DNA of 64,000 nt, taken from Adineta vaga (Eukaryota > Animalia > Rotifera). Location of the stretch: contig CP075497.1 of NCBI GenBank assembly GCA_021613535.1, positions 2,666,001 through 2,730,000 on the forward strand, in the 5' to 3' direction. The notes under the pieces were generated by a model. That model was not told where the DNA came from. It saw nothing but the letters and a program-made list of their open reading frames with translations, and did no database searches. How positions within the stretch are numbered: the stretch's first letter is position 1; each line of letters starts with the position of its first letter. A program made the translations under genes and the position numbers. This document shows positions 3,423 to 59,000 of the stretch, one piece after another.

Positions 3423-6400
3423 TTATTTCCAAGCTTTCTTTGTTTGATGAATAGCTGCGTAACGTTTTGCAACAAAAGAACCGACAACAAATGCAACTGT
3501 TGCCCAACCAATAACCATAAAATCAAAATCATCTTTCAATTGATCAAATATACGAGATGGGAAAACACGTGTAAAAAATAAATCTACAAAATTAAATCAT
3601 TTTTTTCTGTTATTTGATTAACAAATTCTTCCGCTTTTTTCTCTACATACCAAGGCCGTAAGCAAAAACAACAGAAGTCGATTCGAGACCCGTCGACACC
3701 GTATGAATACCACGAATATTATAAACTTGTTTATAATAATTAATCACACTTTCAAAATTCACCATGATTTCAGGTGTATACATAATTAAACCTTCTTCTC
3801 TACAAGAAAACAAAACAAATCGCTTTTAATTTAGAGGAGAAAATATTGAAAAGTATTTACCGATCCGTAGGTGTGGGATCAAGTGGTCGTCGTGGATCGA
3901 ATAACATCCAAGGAATTTCAATAAGCATTCCATTCGGTGTTGCCACTGTAATTTCAAGATTTATTTTCATTCTTTTCTTTCGAAATTTATCTTACTTATG
4001 ATATCACGTGATGTAATTCCTTTTTCAGTCGTTGTTACTTGAATAGCATTGACACCATATGGTAAAATATAAGCTTTGGATTGAATCACAGGTTCGATTG
4101 GATCAAATGATGAAAATGTTGAATAATTATATTGTGCTTCACCTTCGAATAATGAAGAACTAACTGCTTCATATCGTCGATATCGTTGATTATAGTATGT
4201 ATACTAAGAAAAAAAATAAGATAATTCAAAAGAAAATAAAGTTTTTTTATCAAACATACAACAATCCAATTCTCAGCAAGAACAACATGAACTGGTGATT
4301 TAACACGTTTATGTGTATGAGAAAGTTTTAATGAGCCAGTCACTGTATCCAATAAATAAATATTCACAAATGGAACTAAAAGAAACAAAAAGCAAAATTG
4401 AAGAAGTGAAAATCAATTTAACTCGGTTTTTTTTTGTCATATGTTAATTTATGTCATAAAAGTCATTTGTAGGAAAAAAAGACATTCACTTTTATGAATA
4501 CGAACCTGATCGACTGAGAGTGTTCATACCTTACGGAAATATTCATTGTTCGGAGATTCAGTTATGTTTTTTATCGTAGTTGACAATTATCTAATTGCCT
4601 TAGGCGATCTTTTTCTTCTTTCCGACAAACTTAGAAATTCATTTCTTCTTCTTTTTTCATTAAAACTAAATGAACATGTGTCGATCTTATCCAATACTTA
4701 ACATACGAAAAACTCAGCAGATGTTTTACCTATATAAACAATTCGTCTGTTTCCTATTTCTACATGTTTCAAAGATATTTATCATCATCGAATATCCATT
4801 ATAGCATTTTAATTCATTCTGCACGTGTGTAGAACAGTCTATACGATTCTCATTATACGACTTATGATTATATATACTATCAGAAATTGCTGTTTTTCTT
4901 GTCGACAGAATTTATTATCTCTAATCAAATTTCAACACTTATCCACCTACATTTTCGATGAAAGATTGCCTGGAATGTATCTCATGAAAATATGTTTTTT
5001 TCAAAAACAAAATACCTTTTTGATAATCAATTCCTTCAGTGACAATAGCAATTAAATTTGGATTTGTATATTTATAAAGCACACTTCGATCACCCAGAAC
5101 AATACCAGCCGAATGAACGCGATCTATATGAAATGATTTGTTCAAGAATTGCATAAATTCATTGATCTTTTTTTTTTACCTGAACTCAATCGTGTATGAA
5201 TATTGATGACTTGTTCATTTTGAAATGCCACTCGCCAGACTTCTTTTAAATTTGACGACTAAATAAAAATGTTCTCAGTAACGGTTATGTGCAAATATAA
5301 GGGTTTTCTCTTCAATTAGATTCAGAATCGTCAAATTCACATCATCGAACATTTTCTCTCAACTAGATTCGATCCATAAATCTTTCAACTCTTGACATTC
5401 AACTAAAATTTTCAACTTACAGTTTCTTGATCCTTTTCATTGATAGTTAAATAATACCCAATAAATGCTTGTTCACTTTTGTCGAAGAGATAAATATACG
5501 TTGGAAATGTTGTACTCAATGCTCGTGATAAGGGTACTGTTGGATATGTATGAATCTAAAGATAATATCGAAATAATCTTTATAAGAAATAAGTAATGTC
5601 GTTCTTAAACAGACCTTGTTATTGGTATCAACAAATAATAAGACTCTACAGAAATCGTTAACAGTTTGTGTTGAAAGAAAAACACGTTTGATACGATGTG
5701 GGAGTGATGATGTACTTAGATTATCTTCTAAATCTCCTGTATAAGGATTAAATGTTCGAACATGAGTTTCATAGGAAGATTTCTAAAGAAAAAACAAATT
5801 AATTTCGAATAGTGTTCAATAGAAATTATGTTCTTACTCGATCACGATAAACAATTGATGCTAATGGTGGATGAGTATAATGAGCAGCGGAACGAATATG
5901 AAATAAAGGTACTTGAATTGTATTAAAATGTTCAAATGGAGCAAAATTGGAAAAATAATGTTTCCAAAGAATACCACCACTTTGTGTTAAAATACCAAAA
6001 ACCTATATAAACGAGAAAAAAAGAGAAGATTTGTTTGTTTCAGAAGAGAAAAAAAGAAAAACTTGATTTTACTTTTCCAACGGATGTAACAACGATAAGA
6101 ATTTTATTAAGATTAAATTCATCACGAACAAGTGCTGCTTGTTTATCCATATAATCACGATTACGATTTCCATTTGTAAACATTTCCATTAAACGTACAA
6201 AGAAACTCTAAAAATAATCAAATTCTTCTTTAGAAACAAATATTAATGATCTCTTTACAATTAATTGTGATATTTGCGATGAAATTCGTCGTACGAACAT
6301 ACTAAACATTCCTGTTCCACCAAATTCTTCTTCAATACGCATTTGTCCACTTGATAAAGATAAATCAAATGTTTCGACTGATATAATTGAAGATAAAGCT

Positions 6401-47252: not shown

Positions 47253-50200
47253 TTAATTTTTGTTCAGTTGTTCATCACCTGTTATCACTTTATCTTGCTC
47301 TACATTCTCCTCTTTTTCGTGAACTGAATTATTATCATCATCATCATCTGTAAAATATTTCAAGAATAATAATGAATTATCAAAAGAAAAACTATTTCTC
47401 ATCAAACGGCGAAAAAGAATTGACAAAACTAATTCTTACATTTTAATTGTCCAGGTTTCTTATCTGGTTCAAGATCAAGAGATATTCTCTTGTCACCTTC
47501 ACCTGCATCCAACCAACGATCAACAGGGAATCTACATAAGACAATCGAATTTATTTCTATTGATTTCATAAATGAATGACTAACTTGTAAGTTTCGTTGC
47601 GTGAAACATGACGAATTTCAATTGAATCTACATACCAACCAGCACCAATTCCACTACCATCATGTTCAAGTCGAATACTCGTAATCTGAAAGTCATAGAA
47701 CGAATAAATTAGTATCTATTTTTAAGTTAATATGTTTTTACCTTTCCAACATCAGATGCGTTAATTTTAAACTGATCTGTAGCGCCGGATTCAAAGAGAT
47801 TTCGACTTTTATCCACTGGTTCTTTCAATTGATTTCGTTCAACTTTGTTTTGTTCACCAGTTATACCCAAGTATACATTTGCATCTATTTTACGGAAAAA
47901 TAATCAAACATTGTTGGCAATAAAATCGTTCATGAATTAAAATTACCAGTTCCTGCTCCACGTTTCTTTGCTGTTTTCACCGTAACTTCATATTCTACTG
48001 TGTTGTCCGTTTTCTTATTATCTAAATGATGTGATAAACGATATAAACGAATTCGTTTGATAAAAGAAGATAGAGCACAACGACGATGACTTTTACAAGG
48101 AAATCAAAGTAGATACGAGCAAAAGAAAACAACTACGAGAACAGCACGAAATATAAGTGTTTTAACTAACCCTCATTATCGAAAAAGTTATCATGTTGAA
48201 CTTTTTCTTCATCGGTATTTTCTCCTTTTGATACATACATATATATATATATTTTATGTGTTAGAAACAATATTTAAAGACAAAAAAGTGTCTAATTACC
48301 GGATGCCATTTTAGCTGCAGGTTTCTTATTGGGTTCTAGTTCAAGACTAATGCGTTTATCACCTTCGTTTACATCAAGCCATCGCTCAACAGGAAATCTA
48401 AAACAATCAAATAATAAAATCCCACCCATTGAATTCTTATTCATACTTGATAGTATTGTTGTTATAGTTTACTTCGACATAATCACAATACCATCCAGAA
48501 CCCATACCAGTACCATCATGTTCAATAATAATAGTTTTTAACTGAAAACAAAAGTATAAATTTCATTTATAAACAATCAAATGAGACAGTCATTTACTTG
48601 GCCGACATCGATGTGATCGAAAATAAATTCGTCTCTAGCATTGTTTTCAAATGGATCCGATCCAGCTTCAGCTTTTGCCAAGTGTAGTCGAACAATCTTA
48701 TTCTTATCACCATTGAGAGTAAGATAAACATTTGCATCCGTACCTGATCCTATCTTCGAACCTGTTTTCGTAACAACTGTATATTTAGTTTCTAAAATAG
48801 AATAAGATTTATATTAAAAAACAAATTGATTGAATTTAATAAATATATCTACTTTTATTGGCATCAGATGATGGTTGATTAGCTGTAGTCGTTGCTTGTG
48901 TAGGTTCTTGGAAAAAGAAAGATAATTTTTAGTTTTACAATGAAATAATTTATTGATAATATTCGTACCGTTTTTAGATGCGTTTGAAACTTCTTTCGTT
49001 GGTTTCTGAGTTGTCGATGCATTCGTTGTTGAACTTTCTAAAACACACAATCAATAAATATTATGTGAACACTTTCGTAGTAAGTTTAAATAGATTTTGT
49101 TACCATTCGATTGTGTTGGTTTGCTATCTGGGTCGAGATCGAGTGAAATTCTCTTGTCACCTTCGCCGGAATCTAACCAACGATCAATGGAGAATCTAAA
49201 AAAAGAGCAAATCTTCAAATCAATTTACTTCGATTTCGATGAAATACTTACGTATAGGTTTCGTTACGTGAAATATGACGAATTTCAATTGAATCGGCGT
49301 ACCATCCTGAACCAATTCCAGTTCCATCATGTTCAATACGAATAGTTTTGATCTATAAAGTATGCAATCTTTCTTTCTGACTAATTTTTTCTCTGATTCT
49401 TTTACTTTGCCAACATCAGGCGCATGGATTTTAAAACGATTTGTTGCACCTGATTCAAAAAGATTTCGACTACGTTCGATCGATTCTTTCAGTTGATGTC
49501 GTTCCGTTTTGGTCTTATCACCAAACATACCCAAGTATACATTGGCATCTATTTAATTATAAAATTCCAACTTCTTCTGATAAAGTAAAATCTAAATCTA
49601 AATTACCAGTGCCAGCTCCTTTCTTCTTCGCTGTTTTTACTGTCACTTCATAGTCGACAGCATTTGCTGCATTTGAATCATCTAAATATGAATTTTACAA
49701 CGATTATACAAGAAGAACAGCTCAGCGAATAGCATGCACATGCATTGTATCGATCAATAAGCGAAAGCATACGATAAAAAGAAAACTACGATTACATCAT
49801 GGAGCATATCTATTCAACTAACCCTCATCATCAAAAAAGTCATCATATTCATTTTTGTCTTCTGCAGAAGATGATTCCTTTTCATTTTCGTCATTCGATG
49901 AAGTAGAAGTACGTTTTCCTTTTTAGTTAGTATAAATTGTTTTAGATCAATTGCAATATTTAAATCTGTAATTACCTGTTGAAATATTAGCTACAGGTTT
50001 CTTGTTTGGTTCAAGTTCTAAACTAATACGTTTGTCACCTTCATCTGTATCGAGCCAACGTCCAACAGGAAATCTAAAGTAACAGAATAACAAACTATTG
50101 ATATGAATTCATCATCCATACTTGACAGTATTGCCATTGTATTTCACTTCGACAGAATCACAGAACCAACCAGAAGCCATTCCTGTATTATCATGTTCAA

Positions 50201-53200
50201 GAACGATAGATTTCAACTAGAATTAGCAATAGGGTTAGTATGAAAATGTAAAAGGTCAAGAAACTTACTTGGCCGACATCGACATCTTCGAATTTAAAGT
50301 CATCTTTTGAACCTTTTTCAAATGGATTTCGACCAGATTCTGATTTTTGTAATTGTTGTCGAACAATTCGTTGTTTGTCTCCATTAAGAGTAATAAATAC
50401 ATTAGCATCAGTACCCGATCCCAAGGCTGAGCCAGTTTTGACATTAATTAAATACTGAGTTGCTAGATAATGAAAAAAAATTAAAACTTTCTATTTTCGA
50501 TCAAGATCGAATAAAATGCATTACGTTTGTTCGATGCCGATTGTTCTTCAGCTTTCGTTGTTTTTTTGTTTGCGTCAGTCGTACTTCCGACTTCAGATCC
50601 TTTTGGATCTTTCGTTGTTTTTTGATATGCTAGAGTATCTGGTGATTTACTATCTGAAAAAGAAATCAAATTTCATTTTCATTGTCTATTTTCTAATTGT
50701 TAGTGTCTGTTAACCTTTCAATTGTCCAGGTTTCTTATCTGGTTCAAGATCAAGAGATATTCTCTTGTCACCTTCACCTGCATCCAACCAACGATCAACA
50801 GGGAATCTACATAAGACAATCGAATTTATTTCTATTGATTTCATAAATGAATGACTAACTTGTAAGTTTCGTTGCGTGAAACATGATGAATTTCGATTGA
50901 ATCTGCATACCAACCAGCACCTAATCCCGTTGCATCATGTTCAATTCGAATTGTTTTAATCTAAAATAAATATGAAAACATGTCGAAATCGATTGATAAC
51001 TTCATTGTCTTACTTTTCCAACATCAGGTGCATGGATTTTAAAACGATCTGTTGCACCTGATTCAAATCGATTAAGTGTACGATCCATTGTTTCTTTCAA
51101 TTCATGACGTTCTGTCTTGGTCTTGTCACCGAACATACTCAAGAATACATTCGCATCTATGTTATTGAGAATTTATAAAAAATATTTTCTTCCTAAATGA
51201 TCATTGGATGAACTTACCAGTTCCTGCTCCTCGTTTATCGGCAGTCTTTACAGTTACTTCATAATCGACAGCATTTGGTGCATTTGAATCATCTAAATAT
51301 TTCACAACGAATGTAATTACTAAATAGTTTATTCATTTAATTGAAAGCACATCAAAGGTTTCACATTGACAAGCAAAAGCATGCTATAAAGCAAAAGCGA
51401 CATTAGCGATCCGAAGGGTGACTAGCTAACGAACCATCATCATCATCGAAAAAGTCATCATATTCGACTTTTTCCGGAGACGATGGTCTCGCTTTATTTT
51501 CATCATTCGATGAATTAGAAGTATCTTGTTTTTCTTGATTACTTTCTATTTCTGATGTATGTGAAAAAGAATCATTCATTATAAAAGAAATTTTCAATAA
51601 TTCAATTCAATATTTACCTGTTGAGGTTTTTGATGTTGGTTTCTTATTTGGTTCCAATTCGAGACTAATGCGTTTGTCACCTTCATCTGTATCGAGCCAA
51701 CGTCCAACAGGAAATCTAAAGTAACAGAATAACAAACTATTGATATGAATTCATCATCCATACTTGACAGTATTGCCATTGTATTTCACTTCTACAGCAT
51801 CTAAATACCATCCAGATGCCGTACCAGAATTATCATGTTCAATAACAATAGTTTTTAACTAAAAAATAAATGATGATATTTTGCTAACAAAACTTTAGTA
51901 AAACTCACTTGACCAACATCGACATCCTCGAATTTAAAGTCATCTTTTGAACCTTTTTCAAATGGATTTCGACCAGATTCTGATTTTTGTAATTGTTGTC
52001 GAGCAATTCGTTGTTTATTACCATTCAGAGTAATAAATACATTAGCATCAGTGCCTGATCCAAAGGCTGAACCAGTTTTAGTAGTGACTGTATATTGAAC
52101 TTTCTTCGAACTTTGAGATGCTGGCCGTGGTGCTGAAAGTTGTCTTTGAGTGGTTTTCGATTTGCCTTCTAAAATAACACACAGAATAAATCAAACATAT
52201 TTATTTGTTATTTCAACTTACTCTTCTTATCCTTTCGTGTATCAAATGGAAATTCCACGATTGCTGAAAGAAATTTATTCCAATAAATCTTCATCTTATT
52301 ATTCAATTTGTTCACTTACATCCTTCAGGATACAAGTCAATAACACTTGTCATAGAATCAATCGATTCAGCCAAAAGAAATCTATTACATAAGTCAAATA
52401 AAATTTCATACAAAGAAAAATGTTTCTCCATACTTTTGTTTGGTTTTTCGTTTACTATCGGTAATTTCAATTGAATCCAATGGCCATGATTCAATTTTAC
52501 TGCATGTCAATGCCAATTTTGTTAACTAATTAAAAAACTCAAAAAATCATTTCAAATTGTTTCAAAATTTAATTCATACTTTTCCAGCATCAAATGCTTT
52601 CTTTTTCAATGTTGTTGACAATCCATCATATTTCTTTGGATCATTTTCATTACCACGTAAATCAATTAAACCTGAACTTCCATTATCACCAAAGACTGTT
52701 AATTTAACAGAACTTTGATCATCATCTCCATATTCAATCGATTCATCACTAGTCACCTTAATATCATAAGTTGTTTCTAGAAAAAAAAGAGCAAAAATAT
52801 TTTCTAAAGAAAACGAACAAAAGTTTGATTCACAAAAATACCTGCACGATCCGGTGGAGCTATGAGATGGAAAGGCAAAAGAAGAAAAAAATGATATCTA
52901 TGAAGAAGCTTATTAGCTTAACTTACAATCAGCTGCTCCTTTAGCGATTTGATCTCGAACATCTTTCAATGCACGTTCGATCGCTCGTTCAGCAGCCATA
53001 TCATCTAAATAATCAAATGAATATTTTAACTTTTGCATCGAAAATTTTCAGAAAACAACGAGAAAAACATTCGTCATGCAATAGAATGAAGACATTCAAC
53101 AAATATCATGCATTTCTTTTCAAGATATAAACTATCTCACTTGGTGAATCTTTTATTTCTAAATAGTTTTTAATCGCATTAAAACAATCTTTCTTGGAAA

Positions 53201-55223
53201 TAAGAATCAATTACTTACGTTGATCTCGTGCAAGTGCAAGAGCTTCTTCAAATGTTTGTTCAGCTTCACGATATTGTCGTAGTTTTGCTTGACTATGTGC
53301 AACAAGAACTTTAGCATTTAATTGCCAAACTGGATCATTCACAGCAACAGCTTCAACATAGGATCGTTCGCCATAGCGTTTTGCACGTTCATAATCACCT
53401 AAAAACAAAAAAGAATGTATCATACAGAAATGATTTTAAACAAACCAAGTCCAAAATGACATTGACCAATTTCATGAAATAACCAAGCTTTTTCTAACGA
53501 TGAGTTTGCCAATGGAATCTTTCGTTCCCAAACTTGAATGGCTTGAGCAAATTGTCCACTACGAGCATAGACACGTCCTAAATTATCCAATGCACGTGAT
53601 GATCGATCATTATCGTTCTTTGATGTTGCATATGTTAAATCTCGGAAATGATAATCTAATGCTTTATTGTAATCGCCTAATTCTAAGTATGCATTGCCTA
53701 AACGTGAATGAATATCGGCAATGACAGGTTGTTTTTCAGAAAATTTGCGTTCATCTAATCGTTCACAGAATTCAAGTAAACGATGGGCACGACGGCGAGC
53801 ATCAACAAATTGATCTGTATTTTGTACTAAAATAAGAAAAGATTTGTTTAGGAATATTGAATGAAAAGGACAAATTTTCTTTACATTCATCAATAGCTTC
53901 AAGTTCACGTTGAACATATGCGTAATTTTCATCATCATTGTCGGCTTTTTTCAAAGATTTGCGAGCATAGAGTGGTTCTTGTTGACGCCAGAAATGTGTT
54001 CGACCATCCAAATAATCAATACCATCAGATGCTAATTGATAGATTGCATCACCTGATTTCGTATTCGCTTTTGTTACCGCTATAAAAATCAATTGTATTT
54101 GATTTAGTACGATCATTAAAACTGACTTACTTGTATTATTAATAATTTTATCGAGAAAAACTCGATCTTCATACAGATCACCTAAAAGTTGTTTTGTTGT
54201 TTTTGGATTAGCAGGTGGTGGATGTGGTTTTCGTTGAACGGTTGTATCTTTTCTTTGTGATGCACGTACATAACCAATTGGCTGTTTCTTTTTCTATTAT
54301 GATTTAATAAAGAATAGAAAAAGAAAACAAATAAGTATTTAGTCTTTTATCAAATAAAAACAATCAAATTTAAGCATTATCTGTTTCTTAGCAGATTAAT
54401 CACACGATAAGTTGAAAAAAAAGAGAGAGTTAGTTAAATTTAAACTAGAAGAAAAAATATCACCTTTTTCGCATCTTCCTGTGAAATATCATGCAAATGT
54501 GCAACGATATAAATTCTTATTAAAATAGTTTACCTCGTCATTTTTGTAAAAGATCGAAAGATCGCCACTAGCTTCAAGTTTTACACGGTTTGGATCTAAT
54601 TCAGAAGAGAAATCAGAGAATCAGTTTAGTCAATCGATAAGAATTACCTCCAACTGAATTATCAATTGCTTCTTGAGCTTTGTTAATACCCAATTGAAAT
54701 TCACGTAGATCTGATCGAAGTTTTTTACCACGATGATAAAACATTAAAGCTAATTCGAATTCACCCATTGCATAGAGAGCTTCAGCTTTTTGATATAATC
54801 CCTTAAAGAAAACATTGCCGTATAGATTCATTGTAAAGAAAACACATGACATGAAACATACTCTGGTAAATTCTTTATTGCTTTTCAACGATTCTTCAGC
54901 ATCTTGTAATGCTAAATTATTTTTACCTATCTTTAAATAACATGCTGATCGAGCCACTAAACCATTCAAACGATCATTAATATCTTTTGCTGTTGATTTA
55001 TCATCATCTTGTGGTAAAAGATCAAGTGCCTATATGATTTTTCCTGATAGATAAAAGTCTTTCTTTCTTCAATGAATCGATTTACCTCGGTGTAGGATTG
55101 AATAGCTTTGATATAAAGTTTATCTCGAGAAAACTTTTCACCTTCGCCCATTAATGCTTGAAAACTTTTCAAAGGACCTTTTGTTTCCGAGGAAACACTG
55201 ATTTCGTCGTCTTTTTTAACCAT
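47253..55223 (-). CDS. TTC25: TTC25/ODAD4 (outer dynein arm docking TPR protein) fused in frame to seven C-terminal PLAT/LH2 domains
   Basis: LVARSACYLKIG..ALQDAEESL; GLYQKAEALYAMGEFELALMFYHRG..EFQLGINKAQEAIDNSVG; QLLGDLYEDRVFL; YLDGRTHFWRQQEPLYAR; SRALDNLGRVYARSG..WERKIPL..EKAWLFHEIGQC; WQLNAKVLVAHSQ. Splicing then continues into PLAT repeats (VKT..GAGTDANV..FE.G..D.F..DVG..IEHD..G..GWY..FPV.RWLD..EGD). Stop at 47253. Confidence 0.85.
47440..52110 (-). repeat. Three tandem ~1.6-kb units, each encoding PLAT-A, an acidic linker and PLAT-B
   Basis: PLAT-A (KTGS..GSGTDANV..TLNG) starts at ~52100, ~50465 and ~48790. PLAT-B (YEVTVKTA..GAGTDANV) starts at ~51290, ~49680 and ~48020. Intron positions are conserved among units. 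Confidence 0.9.
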
Positions 55224-56074
55224 CGTTCGTATTGATGTGTGAAAAAATAAAACTAATGTCCGTTTTGTTTCAAAGCAACATACTTTTGTTAAGAAAAACA
55301 ACCATTTTCGATTGTAGATCTCTACTAGACAACAACACCTTCAATTTTACACTTTCGATAGAGTTCGCTACATATCAATAACAAAATTTTACTGAACATT
55401 TGATTATCAACTTTATAAACTATTTTCTATCGTATTTAATCATGTGTCGTATGTAACCGATGCTTGTCAATAGTCGTTTTTTTTTCTTATTTTCTAAGAT
55501 ATTCATATGTACAGATCGAAAAATGTCTGTCAATTTTGTTTGCATGAAGAATGTTATTTTAAAGGTGTGCAAATGTTAATCTTTGTTGTTCTTCATAAAT
55601 CAATACCTGACTTTTTTTCGAACAGAATAAAACATCATTCCTTTTGCCATTGAAATGAAATGGCAAGAATGATACTCACATATTGCTTTTTATTCATGAT
55701 TAGATTAAAATAATTGACCTATATTTCAATAGATATCGCACATCGTCAAATTTCAATCTTTTCAACATGATTCGTTCAAATAAAACTCAAGATTGGTTGA
55801 AAGAACAGTAAAGAAAAAGGGCATAAGAACGAAAAATGAATGAGAGAAAAACGAAAAAGAAAGCTTATATTACTCTTTACTAGTTCTTCCACGCGTTTGC
55901 GCGTGATGAATGCCATGATCATCATAATTGTTATAAAACACGCTCGTGTCAACATTCGTTTACCATTTCAATCTGGCGTCTTCCCAAATTTCTGATGATC
56001 TCTACTATCCTAATCGACAATTTCTCAAACAATATATTAGTTTAGCTACACATAATTGTAATGAAACTGCTATC

Positions 56075-59000
56075 ATGACACCACCTGCAGGTGAGAATGC
56101 ATTTGCAACATTAACATCAACATTATCAACAATCAATCCATTGAATCAAACAAATATAAATAATATTGACGAATGGCTTTTACTTGATTCTAATAATGGT
56201 TTTATTCGTTTATATGATCCAAATGATGCTTCATCATCCTATCCACGTTCAAAACTTGTTCCATGTACAATGTGGACAACAATTGAACAAATTTGTTTAA
56301 GATTAAATAATGATTTAGATCCTCGAACATGGTATGTGCAATATCATGGTGATCGAATTCAACATTTACGTCCCGATGAAAAACCTTTATTTATTCAACA
56401 TAATTATCTTCTATCCATTGGATTTTCCAGTATTCAACGTTTACAACAAGAAGGCGATAAACATGATCTTGGTTATCTCATACGATTTCTTTCAGATCGA
56501 TTAATGCTCGATCCAAAAATTCAACCACGAAGTTTATCAACATTAGCTTGGATTCGAAAAGGCAAATTAATACGAAAATGGACGAAACGTAAATGTGTTA
56601 TATCCACAAGTCGATTGACCGTTTATCCTGGTTTGATAAAAAGAAACAACAACATTGTTCATTAATTATTTTCTATTTTCTAGATGCAAATACAAATCCT
56701 TATGTGATAGAATTACAACGTGCAAGTGTTGAAGAAGTTCGTTCTAAAGATAAACCATTCTGTTTGAAATTATCAATTGATGATGGTAAAAGTGACGTTT
56801 TATACATGGCTTTGAATAATGATGAAGAATACAGTCGATGGCTGAAACGTTTACGAAAAGTAATTTTAACCTTCGAAAATAAATTTGATCATTTGATTTG
56901 ATTTTTGCTTTAGACAACAAATAAATTACCTGACATAGCTGATTATTCTTCAAGTCATTTAGAATTAATTCCTAAAAGTTTATTTGTCAATAGTAAATTA
57001 GTTGTACTTAATTTACGTCATAATAATTTACTAATGCGACCATCTGATGAAGTGGTTTTTACAGTTGGTATGTCGTTTTTATTCTCTTCTTTGATCTAAT
57101 CCCTGTTTTTCTATGATATCGAAAAAAGGAAAAAGTCATTTCAAAGGTTTCAATACTTAATTTGAAATCATCAATGTACTTTTCGAAACCTCTCTATCCG
57201 ATTCAAAAAGCTGATAACCATATTGCATTTGTAAATATATCAATCGTATCTTTTTTTGCAGGTTGGTTAGATGATTTAACACGTTTTCAATATTTAACCA
57301 GTTTAAATCTTGCTGATAATGATTTAAAAACATTTCCTATTGTCATTTGTCATCTTCCACGTTTAATCGATTTAAATCTTGGTAATAATGGAATCGATTG
57401 TATTCCAAGTGATATTGAAAAACTACAAAGGTACAAAAAAGAAACAACAACTTTGTTTCGATCTTTTTCTTCAAATTCAATTTTGAATTTTGTTTAGTAT
57501 GGAAATTCTAAATCTTCAAAGTAATCGTTTATCGATTTTACCAACTGAAATTGAAAATTTAAAACGTTTGCGTGATTTTTATTTGGATTTTAATCTCTTC
57601 AAAGATATTCCAATCTCGTTAGCACGTTTAACAAATGTTCGTTATTCTGATATAACGAATTTATGTTTAGCTGGAAATCATATTCGAAAATTATCCATCG
57701 ATTCAGCTCAATAGTAAGTAAACATTTTGAAGGATATGAAATTTTTTAATTAAGAATTTTTAGTCTTGAACATTGTCGTCAATTAGATTTACGAATGAAT
57801 CAATTAAAGTTCGATGAAAATGATTTAATTTTATTAAAACGTTTAACTCATATAACACATTTGGATATTTCACATAATTATCGTCTGAATGAACTGGATT
57901 TACGTTCATTAGCAACACTGGAAAATCTTAATTGTTCTTATAATAATACATTTCGTTTAATTTTAAATGGACATTCATTAATACACTTAAATGCTTCACA
58001 TAATAGTAAAATCATTTCTTTTCATTTTATTTATTGAAAAGATTCTTTTTTCTCGATTTAGAATTGAAACATATTGATGTTCTTACTTCTCCAATGAATT
58101 TAATTGAACTTGATATAAGCTCGTAAGTGTTCGATTGATTATTCAATTCATTCCGTTTCATTTAATATTCGTAGAAATGAATTTCAAATACTTCCGGATT
58201 GGTTCAATGAAGAAAATTCCTCATTAAAACGATTCATTGCCGATCATAATCTTCTGAATGTTCTACCAGTCAAGTAAATTTCACTTTTTTTCCTTCATTT
58301 TTCAAAAATTCATACGTGATTTTTCCAGATTTTTTCTTTCAAATAAACGTCTTCAATACATTCGATTGAATCACAATCGTTTATTACATCTTCCTGAACG
58401 TATAGCAAATTGTAATGTTGAAACTTTGTTACTTCATTCAAATCGTCTTGAACATCTTCCAGTAAATCTCTTGAAAAATCTTCATCGATTGAAAATATTA
58501 AATTTAACACAAAATCAATTGATTTCTTTACCCTTACCAAATGATCGAACTGATTTAAATCGTTTACAAGAACTTTATTTATCCTGTAATGAATTAGATG
58601 ATGATGTTTTTGCATTAATTTCACGATATGAAAGATTGAAAGTCTTGCATTTAGCTTATAATCGTATTGAACAAATTGATGATGTGTAAGATGATTTATT
58701 TCATTCAAAAGATTTCCTTTGAACCTTTTTTTCTTTAGTGCATTGAGAAAATTAGTTTCGTTAACAGAATTAAATTTATCAGGAAATAATATCGAATTAT
58801 TACCACAAACAGCATTGATATCAATGGAAAATTTACAAGTCTTATGTCTACATTCTAATCAATTACGTGCAATACCAGATTTACGTCGATTCACTTCACT
58901 TAAAGTATAAATTCGAAAAGAAATTCGCATCATTGATTTGTTTTATTTTAGATATTGGATTTGAGTTTTAATGAAATTGATTCAGCATCCATTGATAATC

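Follow-up and report, generated by a model that had tools for sequence, protein, structure and literature searches.

A single expressed gene on the minus strand of the window (the whole 64,000-nucleotide stretch of Adineta vaga contig CP075497.1 analyzed here) is almost certainly the rotifer orthologue of ODAD4/TTC25, in which a TPR array and a post-TPR helix are followed by six residues, a divergent PLAT domain, and three PLAT-B/PLAT-A pairs born of tandem duplication of a 1.64-kb exon block, with small acidic cassettes between B and A that are used alternatively. ODAD4 takes part in attaching outer dynein arms to the microtubules of cilia. In mammals and algae the docking of these arms has been mapped well, and the C-terminal ODAD4 tail is regarded there as an appendage without features. 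The features of the locus are listed in Table 1.

Gene structure and expression

The gene model, rebuilt from coordinates, runs from an ATG at 55223–55221 to a TAA at 47255–47253, exactly the gene ends given in an earlier reading of the DNA made without database searches (the sequence-only reading). It has 43 exons totaling 5019 nt (1672 codons, with no internal stops), and every intron is of the GT..AG type, with a span of 47–214 nt; the longest, at 214 nt, is intron 9. An AATAAA is present just downstream of the exon 43 stop. The gene is annotated in Adineta vaga as I4U23_028101, with two isoforms (P0158 and P0159), both 100% identical in their exon peptides to those encoded in the window.

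Table 1. Features of the A. vaga ODAD4–PLAT gene, with positions in the window and the evidence for each.
Feature	Positions	Strand	Evidence
Exons 1–9, ODAD4/TTC25 TPR core, aa 1–485	53219..55223	-	Exon model, TPR Pfam matches, ODAD4 structure matches, RNA
Exon 10, post-TPR helix	52927..53004	-	Alignment to metazoan ODAD4; RNA cover without intron
Micro-exon 11, 18 nt, 6-residue link from helix to first PLAT	52842..52859	-	RNA contigs X1, X10, X5; L003 and L004
Exons 12–15, PLAT0, divergent	52222..52776	-	hhalign, AlphaFold/Foldseek
Exons 16–18, PLAT-B1	51618..52168	-	PF01477 35.2 bits on exon 16 alone; unit alignment; RNA splice joints
Exon 19, first acidic cassette (117 nt, YDDFFD motif)	51435..51551	-	Frame; missing from RNA contigs
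ATGCTTTYGCTT, intronic element following exon 19	51371..51382 (second copy 49759–49770)	-	Conserved
Exons 20–23, PLAT-A1	50715..51292	-	Model, Pfam, unit alignment; joint 50806->50860 in 3 RNA runs
Exon 24, low-complexity linker	50525..50653	-	Joints 50462->50525 and 50653->50715 in X1, X10
Exons 25–27, PLAT-B2	49976..50462	-	Exon 25 matches PF01477 (34.6 bits); B2 85% identical to B1 in aa
Exon 28, second acidic cassette (96 nt)	49823..49918	-	Frame; RNA skips exon
Exons 29–32, PLAT-A2	49104..49681	-	Joints 49548->49607, 49352->49406, 49195->49252 in 3 RNA runs
Exons 33–34, Ser/Thr-rich linker	48853..49037	-	Joints 49037->49104, 48906->48969, 48791->48853
Exons 35–37, PLAT-B3	48300..48791	-	PF01477 33.3 bits on exon 35; joints 48541->48598, 48397->48447
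Exon 38, third acidic cassette (54 nt)	48171..48224	-	Frame; RNA contigs skip; both public isoforms use
Exons 39–42, PLAT-A3	47440..48021	-	Model, unit alignment; present in P0158
Exon 43, acidic C-terminus with the TAA stop	47253..47347	-	C-terminus identical in P0158

Predicted joints are visible in the RNA contigs of three studies (X1, X10 and X5) as CT..AC skips on the plus strand, and the same comparison with a DNA run (X8) reveals none of them. Exon 8 is joined to exon 7 by RNA loose ends, and the RNA contigs can be followed from exon 16 through exons 12, 11, and 10 to exon 9, with intron 9 absent. Micro-exon 11 is seen as 16 'letters between' in the contigs of all three studies, and is kept, with identical phases, in contigs L003 and L004 from relatives. 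The joints listed are 15 of 29, and the joint between exons 9 and 10 (53004|53219), which is not among the 15, we infer from an X10 record (record 7, 836 nt) of which ∼151 nt lie in exon 9, as well as from bin depths equal to exon-only cover (6.36 = 15.7 × 81/200). Isoform proportions are not obtainable from the RNA contigs, from which rare forms are dropped.

The junction itself, from the end of exon 9 at 53219 (phase 1) through exon 10 and micro-exon 11 to the start of exon 12 at 52776, is as the sequence-only reading wrote it, and that reading's proposal that the TPR region continues in frame into the PLAT domains as one gene is borne out by the rebuilt frame and by RNA contigs crossing from TPR to PLAT exons. 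The alternative is that two neighboring genes have been misjoined, one a TTC25 with TPRs alone that stops after exon 9, the other a PLAT gene in its own right. It draws on the length of intron 9, on the fact that reading through exon 9 gives two codons and then a stop with an AATAAA within the intron, and on an in-frame ATG upstream of exon 10 in the A. vaga genome. However, exon 10 is itself the conserved ODAD4 helix, and because it is without a Met in L003, L004, and the relative L006 it cannot begin a separate protein there. Moreover, L006 is an intronless, cDNA-like contig holding a single 1639-aa TPR-plus-PLAT frame across the junction, and TPR-only transcripts alongside PLAT exons with a promoter of their own are contradicted by RNA contigs that join the two sets of exons without intron 9. 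We therefore reject the two-gene arrangement as extremely improbable. P0160, a protein from a Logan contig, has an architecture identical to that of L006, and in L003, L004, and L005, which are genomic contigs from three relatives, exon order and phases are as in A. vaga.

The ODAD4/TTC25 core

The N-terminal ∼510 residues are the sole ODAD4/TTC25 match in the genome, in which no second ODAD4/TTC25 locus was found. These residues are collinear with ODAD4/TTC25 throughout, with a shared TPR array, a non-TPR segment of the FWRQQ type, and a post-TPR helix, and are 40–50% identical to the ODAD4 of vertebrates, echinoderms, and cnidarians. Against solved ODAD4 chains exon 8 matches in one stretch (residues 296–408, 102 bits) with the TPR array collinear, and for exon 7, which is non-TPR, the significant matches among solved structures are to ODAD4 chains only (residues 212–253, E 2e-6). 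Exon 10 corresponds to the post-TPR helix shared by all metazoan ODAD4, aligning with that of urchin, hemichordate, amphioxus, the brachiopod Lingula, coral, and mouse, and a search with the full core of L006 brings up animal proteins of many groups that bear the name ODAD4/TTC25, with E values of 1e-88 to 1e-146. Judged by these similarities the N-terminal part is an ODAD4/TTC25 orthologue, and the identity assigned by the sequence-only reading agrees with the TPR array, the exon 7 segment, and the helix. When exon 8 was used in an all-against-all profile search, long multi-TPR proteins dominated the output; the only yield was a set of three short ORF fragments (P0001, P0002, and P0010), which led to contigs L002–L004. 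A metagenome locus with TPRs (L007, 36% identity) was discarded as unrelated.

ODAD4 is a subunit of the animal pentameric outer dynein arm docking complex (structures 7RRO, 8J07, and 9CPC). In the bovine structure this complex sits on protofilaments A07/A08, repeating every 24 nm, and neighboring CCDC114/151 coiled coils are bridged by the repeats of TTC25 and ARMC4; in mammals ODAD4, in the docking complex on doublet A07/A08, is required for outer-arm attachment (PMC8595878). The C-terminus of ODAD4 is plastic, and domain-free tails give proteins of 900–1400 aa in molluscs, cnidarians, and sharks. Whereas the ODAD4 proteins of vertebrates and the other non-rotifer, non-echinoderm animals listed have a low-complexity tail with no recognized domain, that of A. 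vaga has seven PLATs and acidic cassettes.

The PLAT array

The array begins with a single divergent PLAT (PLAT0), followed by three pairs; the sequence-only reading had the count right, although within each pair the order is B then A and not the reverse. The first exons of the B units each match PF01477 with 33–35 bits (cut-off 23), and the same profile matches five stretches of the public protein P0159 (334.7 bits) and seven of L006 (421 bits). PLAT0 is undetected by Pfam and is without the GTDA and RWLD motifs. Comparison with an independent PLAT profile using hhalign gives 97.8% with E 6.9e-13, its AlphaFold model (pLDDT 76.7) has nine strands, and the best 50 Foldseek matches to this model are all PLAT-bearing proteins (lipoxygenases, lipases, Rab6IP1); as modeled, PLAT0 is a PLAT beta-sandwich.

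All seven units have open frames, and the PLAT motifs are kept in all but PLAT0. Sequence comparisons point to selection on the PLAT arm, with PLAT0 showing 60–81% identity among bdelloids and the A. vaga A and B units pairing one-to-one with units of A. ricciae. A 254-nt patch in PLAT-A3 (47438–47691) is 93% identical to A1, intron included.

A sequence search identifies LOXHD1 proteins as the nearest relatives of the PLAT units. LOXHD1 has 15 tandem PLATs in mammals and is needed in hair-cell stereocilia. The A. vaga protein resembles it in having a tandem PLAT array and in its predicted place in a cytoskeleton-filled cell projection, but LOXHD1 consists of PLATs alone, without TPRs or any further domain, and its site of action is the actin-based stereocilium rather than the axoneme; with a 510-aa ODAD4 core preceding the array, the A. 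vaga protein is thus not LOXHD1. Rotifers carry separate LOXHD1-like genes (P0300, P0301, and a PLAT cluster on contig 2).

Acidic cassettes and isoforms

Exons 19, 28, and 38 are needed by the full frame and are absent from the RNA contigs. The RNA depth is zero in bins 51300–51499, 49700–49899, and 48100–48299, and in bin 51500–51699 it is that of exon 18 only; the joint 49681->49976 (skipping 294) in X1, X10, and X5 bypasses exon 28, and the joint 48021->48300 (skipping 278) in three RNA runs bypasses exon 38. Because the lengths of all three exons are divisible by three the frame holds, so that the main product is ∼1583 aa compared to 1672 for the full form. A module-skipping isoform (17->27) is found both in the RNA contigs and among the public isoforms. 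Exon 19 is lacking in both public isoforms, and is kept in L004 and L005. Exon 38 is internal in P0158, while P0159 terminates there, its frame running on into the intron; no AATAAA is seen in intron 38, and the P0159 end may thus be an annotation artefact. The acidic exons look like alternative cassettes, and their YDDFFD motif is kept across bdelloid genera.

L004 and L005 likewise carry the intronic element ATGCTTTYGCTT downstream of the acidic exon, within introns that are otherwise different; the element may have a role in splicing. A short isoform ending in exon 19, with a read-through stop and an AATAAA ∼70 nt further on, was considered and is unsupported (zero RNA depth in three runs), although the contigs drop rare forms.

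Distribution of the fusion

A TPR-plus-PLAT ODAD4 is present in every rotifer listed (Rotaria, Adineta species, and the monogonont Brachionus), and fusions with a single PLAT occur in the sea cucumbers Apostichopus japonicus and Holothuria leucospilota and the brittle star Amphiura filiformis; all other phyla among the ODAD4 relatives listed lack it (best 120 of 580 matches in the TPR-side search). The sequence-only reading considered whether the architecture might already be common in invertebrate TTC25, and the answer is divided, since it occurs in two phyla and is missing from all others listed. The echinoderm and Brachionus fusions share the order of TPR core, conserved helix, short linker, and PLAT, but Brachionus has 2–3 PLATs and the echinoderms one, compared to seven in A. 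vaga, and A/B pairs are not seen in either. Copy number in the fusion-bearing species ranges from 1 to 8, in that Rotaria and L005 have three PLATs, A. vaga has seven, and L006 and A. steineri have eight; arrays of 7–8 are confined, among the relatives listed, to Adineta and one further bdelloid.

The fusion had been put forward as one not known to have been described, and our literature search found no paper on an ODAD4/TTC25–PLAT fusion; searches on LOXHD1, PLAT, and cilia returned hearing-loss and unrelated papers only. It is, however, already in public protein sets, visible to anyone who inspects those of rotifers, and is not restricted to rotifers. A single clade of ODAD4-borne PLATs is not rejected by the AU test (p 0.246), on a weak tree with few columns. 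We think it unlikely, if conceivable, that ODAD4–PLAT is an old bilaterian form of the docking-complex subunit that rotifers and some echinoderms have retained and other lineages have lost, and whose PLAT arm would link docking sites to the membrane with a 24-nm period and would have been lengthened to 7–8 domains and tuned by cassettes in bdelloids.

Possible roles of the PLAT arm

An axoneme-to-membrane tether is plausible from the nature of PLAT domains and the roles of LOXHD1. In rotifer ODAD4 a string of LOXHD1-like PLAT beta-sandwiches would replace the variable low-complexity tail of other animals, forming an arm that we estimate at a few tens of nm if extended. Projecting from each docking site, the arm would attach to the ciliary membrane from within, or to a protein of that membrane, and so tie the outer doublet surface to the membrane, with the acidic cassettes perhaps tuning linker properties or partner binding. 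We offer this mechanism as a whole tentatively, at somewhat short of an even chance, and its connection to the compound cilia of the corona, raised in the sequence-only reading, is pure speculation. The loss from PLAT0 of motifs that other units keep was counted against the tether.

In LOXHD1 and polycystin-1, PLAT repeats are involved in contacts between proteins. As PLAT domains also mediate such contacts, the membrane is one option only, and the arm could instead act inside the axoneme, binding a protein partner such as dynein heavy-chain tails, the neighboring B-tubule, or another doublet surface protein, and thereby stiffening or regulating outer-arm docking. The docking complex serves as a protein scaffold in any case and may regulate motility (PMC8595878), and the GTDA loop motif missing in PLAT0 is kept in the other units, its relevance to lipid binding being an assumption; but so wide a range of PLAT numbers, from 1 to 8, is odd for a fixed-geometry contact in a 24-nm lattice, and we hold an axonemal partner to be rather less likely than not. 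This range of copy number means that a loosely constrained appendage fits as well as a tuned tether, and in the extreme the array would have accreted on a disordered C-terminus that tolerates additions and would do little that is specific, with copy number drifting through unequal crossing-over of repeated exon blocks. The wide variation of ODAD4 tails between phyla, the different copy numbers of close relatives, and the module-skipping isoform are in its favor. Nonetheless the fusion is retained in both bdelloids and monogononts, the A and B units are distinct and orthologous between Adineta species, all seven are open with motifs intact except in PLAT0, and the acidic motif is conserved across genera, so that mere accretion appears quite improbable.

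The locus illustrates how a domain array grows through duplication of an exon block, with conserved alternative cassettes and gene conversion. What is known of vertebrate ODAD4 is unchanged by the rotifer fusion; rather, two phyla have exchanged the ODAD4 tail for folded PLAT domains, which rotifers have multiplied, and the resulting arm is a candidate link from the docking complex to an outside element, whether membrane or protein.

Gene structure and transcription

Rebuilt by coordinates, the minus-strand frame that joins an ODAD4/TTC25 core to a chain of PLAT domains runs from ATG to TAA through 43 exons (5019 nt, 1672 codons, zero stops), and the start, end and junction peptides proposed by the sequence-only reading were recovered exactly. 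Every intron is bounded by GT..AG and is 47–214 nt long; the DNA of the window is AT-rich and eukaryotic, with short introns. Exon peptides in the public A. vaga proteins are 100% identical to those of the gene. Queries for the database searches were single exons, database proteins, or L006, a related bdelloid contig that serves as a natural uninterrupted reference; the joined A. vaga model was compared in scripts only. The genome searched was the 100.8-Mb assembly of six contigs, with the window on contig 6. An ORF-rich gene lies upstream in divergent orientation, and its counterpart in the bdelloid contigs L002 and L004 matches Pfam RA_3, so that the neighbourhood is conserved among bdelloids.

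In a search of sequencing runs, word shares of 0.37–0.39 in some runs fit spliced RNA and those of 0.76–0.80 in two runs fit DNA. Contigs of three RNA runs from three studies (X1, X10 and X5) and of one DNA run (X8) were compared with 47900–53880; the predicted introns appear as CT..AC skips in the contigs of all three RNA runs, and X8 has no intron skips over this interval. An 836-nt X10 contig (record 7) passes from exon 16 through exons 15–12, micro-exon 11 (16 letters between two aligned pieces) and exon 10 into about 151 nt of exon 9. The exon 9–10 joint itself (53004|53219), outside the 15 of 29 joints listed, we infer tightly from this contig and from depth, which in bin 53100–53299 equals the exon-9 share exactly (6.36 = 15.7 × 81/200), with X1 arithmetic in agreement. 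One X1 RNA contig joins exon 17 to exon 27, skipping a whole module (a block of B-type and A-type PLAT exons) over 1690 nt; this skip recurs in the public isoform P0158 (1292 aa), and could reflect either genuine splicing or an assembly artefact in which near-identical repeat exons crossed over.

Coordinates of features in and around the fused gene
Feature	Location	Position	Strand
ODAD4–PLAT gene	window	55223–47253	minus
Upstream neighbour	window	55946–56665	plus
Acidic exon 19	window	51435–51551	minus
Acidic exon 28	window	49823–49918	minus
Acidic exon 38	window	48171–48224	minus
RNA joint skipping exon 28	window	49681 to 49976	minus
RNA joint skipping exon 38	window	48021 to 48300	minus
RNA joint skipping a module	window	50073 to 51764	minus
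ATGCTTTYGCTT	window	51371–51382	minus
ATGCTTTYGCTT	window	49759–49770	minus
ATGCTTTYGCTT	L004	~5125–5140	
ATGCTTTYGCTT	L005	~2775–2790	
PLAT-A1 patch	window	50713–50966	minus
PLAT-A3 patch	window	47438–47691	minus
PLAT-encoding exon cluster	contig 2	~6533949–6540073	

The ODAD4 core and its junction with the PLAT domains

Exon 8 aligns in one stretch with residues 296–408 of the solved ODAD4 chains (8J07, 7RRO and 9CPC), and the non-TPR exon 7 has significant matches to ODAD4 alone (residues 212–253); one ODAD4-type locus was found in the assembly. Exon 10, past the 214-nt intron 9, aligns with the post-TPR helix of ODAD4 in urchin, hemichordate, amphioxus, brachiopod, coral and mouse, and the core thus extends through exon 10. 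A gene boundary could still fit only within an 18-nt exon and its flanking introns of 67 and 65 nt.

Contigs of relatives were obtained via ORF fragments from a profile search and one metagenome scan. L003, L004 and L005 are genomic and keep the order of exons 8, 9 and 10, the micro-exon, PLAT0, PLAT-B, an acidic exon and PLAT-A, with the same splice phases as in A. vaga. L006 is without introns and has a 52-nt leader, a single 1639-aa frame (ATG at 53 to TAA at 4970–4972) and a tail with AATAAA; its product comprises the TPR core, PLAT0, six B-type PLATs and one A-type PLAT, and we take it for a transcript contig carrying the fused message in another species. A TPR gene followed by a separate PLAT gene is excluded by the helix in exon 10, the RNA contigs and the single frame of L006; exon 10 lacks Met in L003, L004 and L006.

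Composition and history of the PLAT array

The array encodes seven PLAT-like units, in the order PLAT0 (the divergent first unit), B1, A1, B2, A2, B3 and A3. The earlier description of one degenerate PLAT and three pairs thus holds in unit count but not in A/B order, each pair being B then A. The array DNA is a 1.64-kb exon block present three times at 75–95% identity, and protein identities are 65–85% for B/B, 71–80% for A/A, about 50% for A/B and 19–27% for PLAT0 against the others. The first exons of B units alone exceed the Pfam PLAT cut-off, and Pfam finds five PLAT stretches in the public protein and up to seven in relatives. PLAT0 is not detected with Pfam; compared with a separate PLAT profile, built from units of echinoderms, Brachionus and LOXHD1, its own profile matches at 97.8% (E 6.9e-13), and the best 50 structure matches of its AlphaFold model (pLDDT 76.7) are all lipoxygenases, pancreatic lipases or Rab6IP1, each bearing PLAT.

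The L006 core query retrieved TPR-plus-PLAT proteins from Rotaria magnacalcarata, R. sordida, two more Rotaria, Adineta steineri, A. ricciae, A. vaga (I4U23_028101, isoforms of 1292 and 1434 aa) and the monogonont Brachionus calyciflorus. A Brachionus core query, covered to its best 120 of 580 matches, a scope beyond which other phyla may also carry the fusion, adds B. plicatilis and three echinoderms whose proteins bear one PLAT each (67–91 bits): Amphiura filiformis, Apostichopus japonicus and Holothuria leucospilota. The ODAD4 proteins listed for sea urchins, hemichordates, amphioxus, vertebrates, molluscs, an annelid, a brachiopod, a priapulid and cnidarians lack the fusion, and long domain-free tails take its place in several of those groups. 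From the PLAT side, TPR-plus-PLAT matches are rotifer only and the nearest arrays are LOXHD1 proteins. The fusion is real, common to rotifers and some echinoderms and enlarged in some bdelloids. The architecture is already in public annotation, and our literature search found no paper linking ODAD4 or TTC25 with PLAT domains.

In a PLAT-unit tree of 130 columns, with weak deep forks, bdelloid A units and B units form supported clades, and A. vaga units match those of A. ricciae one-to-one, so that the three-pair array is older than their split. B units multiplied independently in the L006 species, and Rotaria and the L005 species have PLAT0, B and A only. With weak support, the holothurian PLAT groups next to the rotifer units, and that of the brittle star is placed elsewhere; a single clade of all ODAD4-borne PLATs is not rejected (AU test, p 0.246). 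PLAT-A3 and PLAT-A1 share a 254-nt patch, two exons with the intervening intron, at 93% identity against about 75% outside it, suggesting recent gene conversion between modules 1 and 3. On contig 2, a cluster of PLAT-encoding exons 35–47% identical to PLAT-B probably represents a LOXHD1-like gene of the rotifer itself, from which the ODAD4-borne units may have come.

Acidic exons

RNA contigs skip exons 28 and 38, and exon 19 has zero depth in the RNA runs. Each of these exons has a length divisible by three, so that leaving them out keeps the frame, with a main product of about 1583 aa. Exon 38 is used by public A. vaga isoforms. A YDDFFD motif, with Asp or Glu on its flanks, separates B from A in all three modules, in L004 and L005 and in some Rotaria and A. 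ricciae proteins, and Rotaria protein clusters with and without it measure 1047 and 1009 aa. With its two phenylalanines in acidic surroundings, this motif presumably resembles the FFAT-like motifs of the VAP-binding kind. The intron that follows the acidic exon contains a conserved element, ATGCTTTYGCTT, in two A. vaga modules and in two other bdelloid species (L004 and L005), while the remainder of this intron differs; with one mismatch allowed, the window holds 3 matches against 0.8 expected. The element contains two UGCU-type motifs and is a candidate splicing regulator site. Conservation across genera together with skipping in the main RNA contigs, from which isoform proportions cannot be drawn, fits regulated alternative exons.

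Proposed function

The gene, its splicing, both domain identities and the distribution of the fusion are established; the role given here is a proposal. In the bovine structure, TTC25 and ARMC4 repeats bridge adjacent CCDC114/151 coiled coils at 24-nm intervals along protofilaments A07/A08 (PMC8595878). Because the rotifer core is well conserved and is the sole ODAD4 match in the genome, it should bridge coiled coils likewise. Here the ODAD4 tail, free and variable in other animals, would have given way to LOXHD1-like PLAT domains arranged in a chain. That this arm is a nearly neutral appendage strikes us as improbable; an axonemal protein partner is a better candidate, if still somewhat unlikely. 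We tentatively favour the reading in which the chain, long enough for membrane contact as estimated from usual PLAT domain size, would bind the ciliary membrane or a membrane protein.
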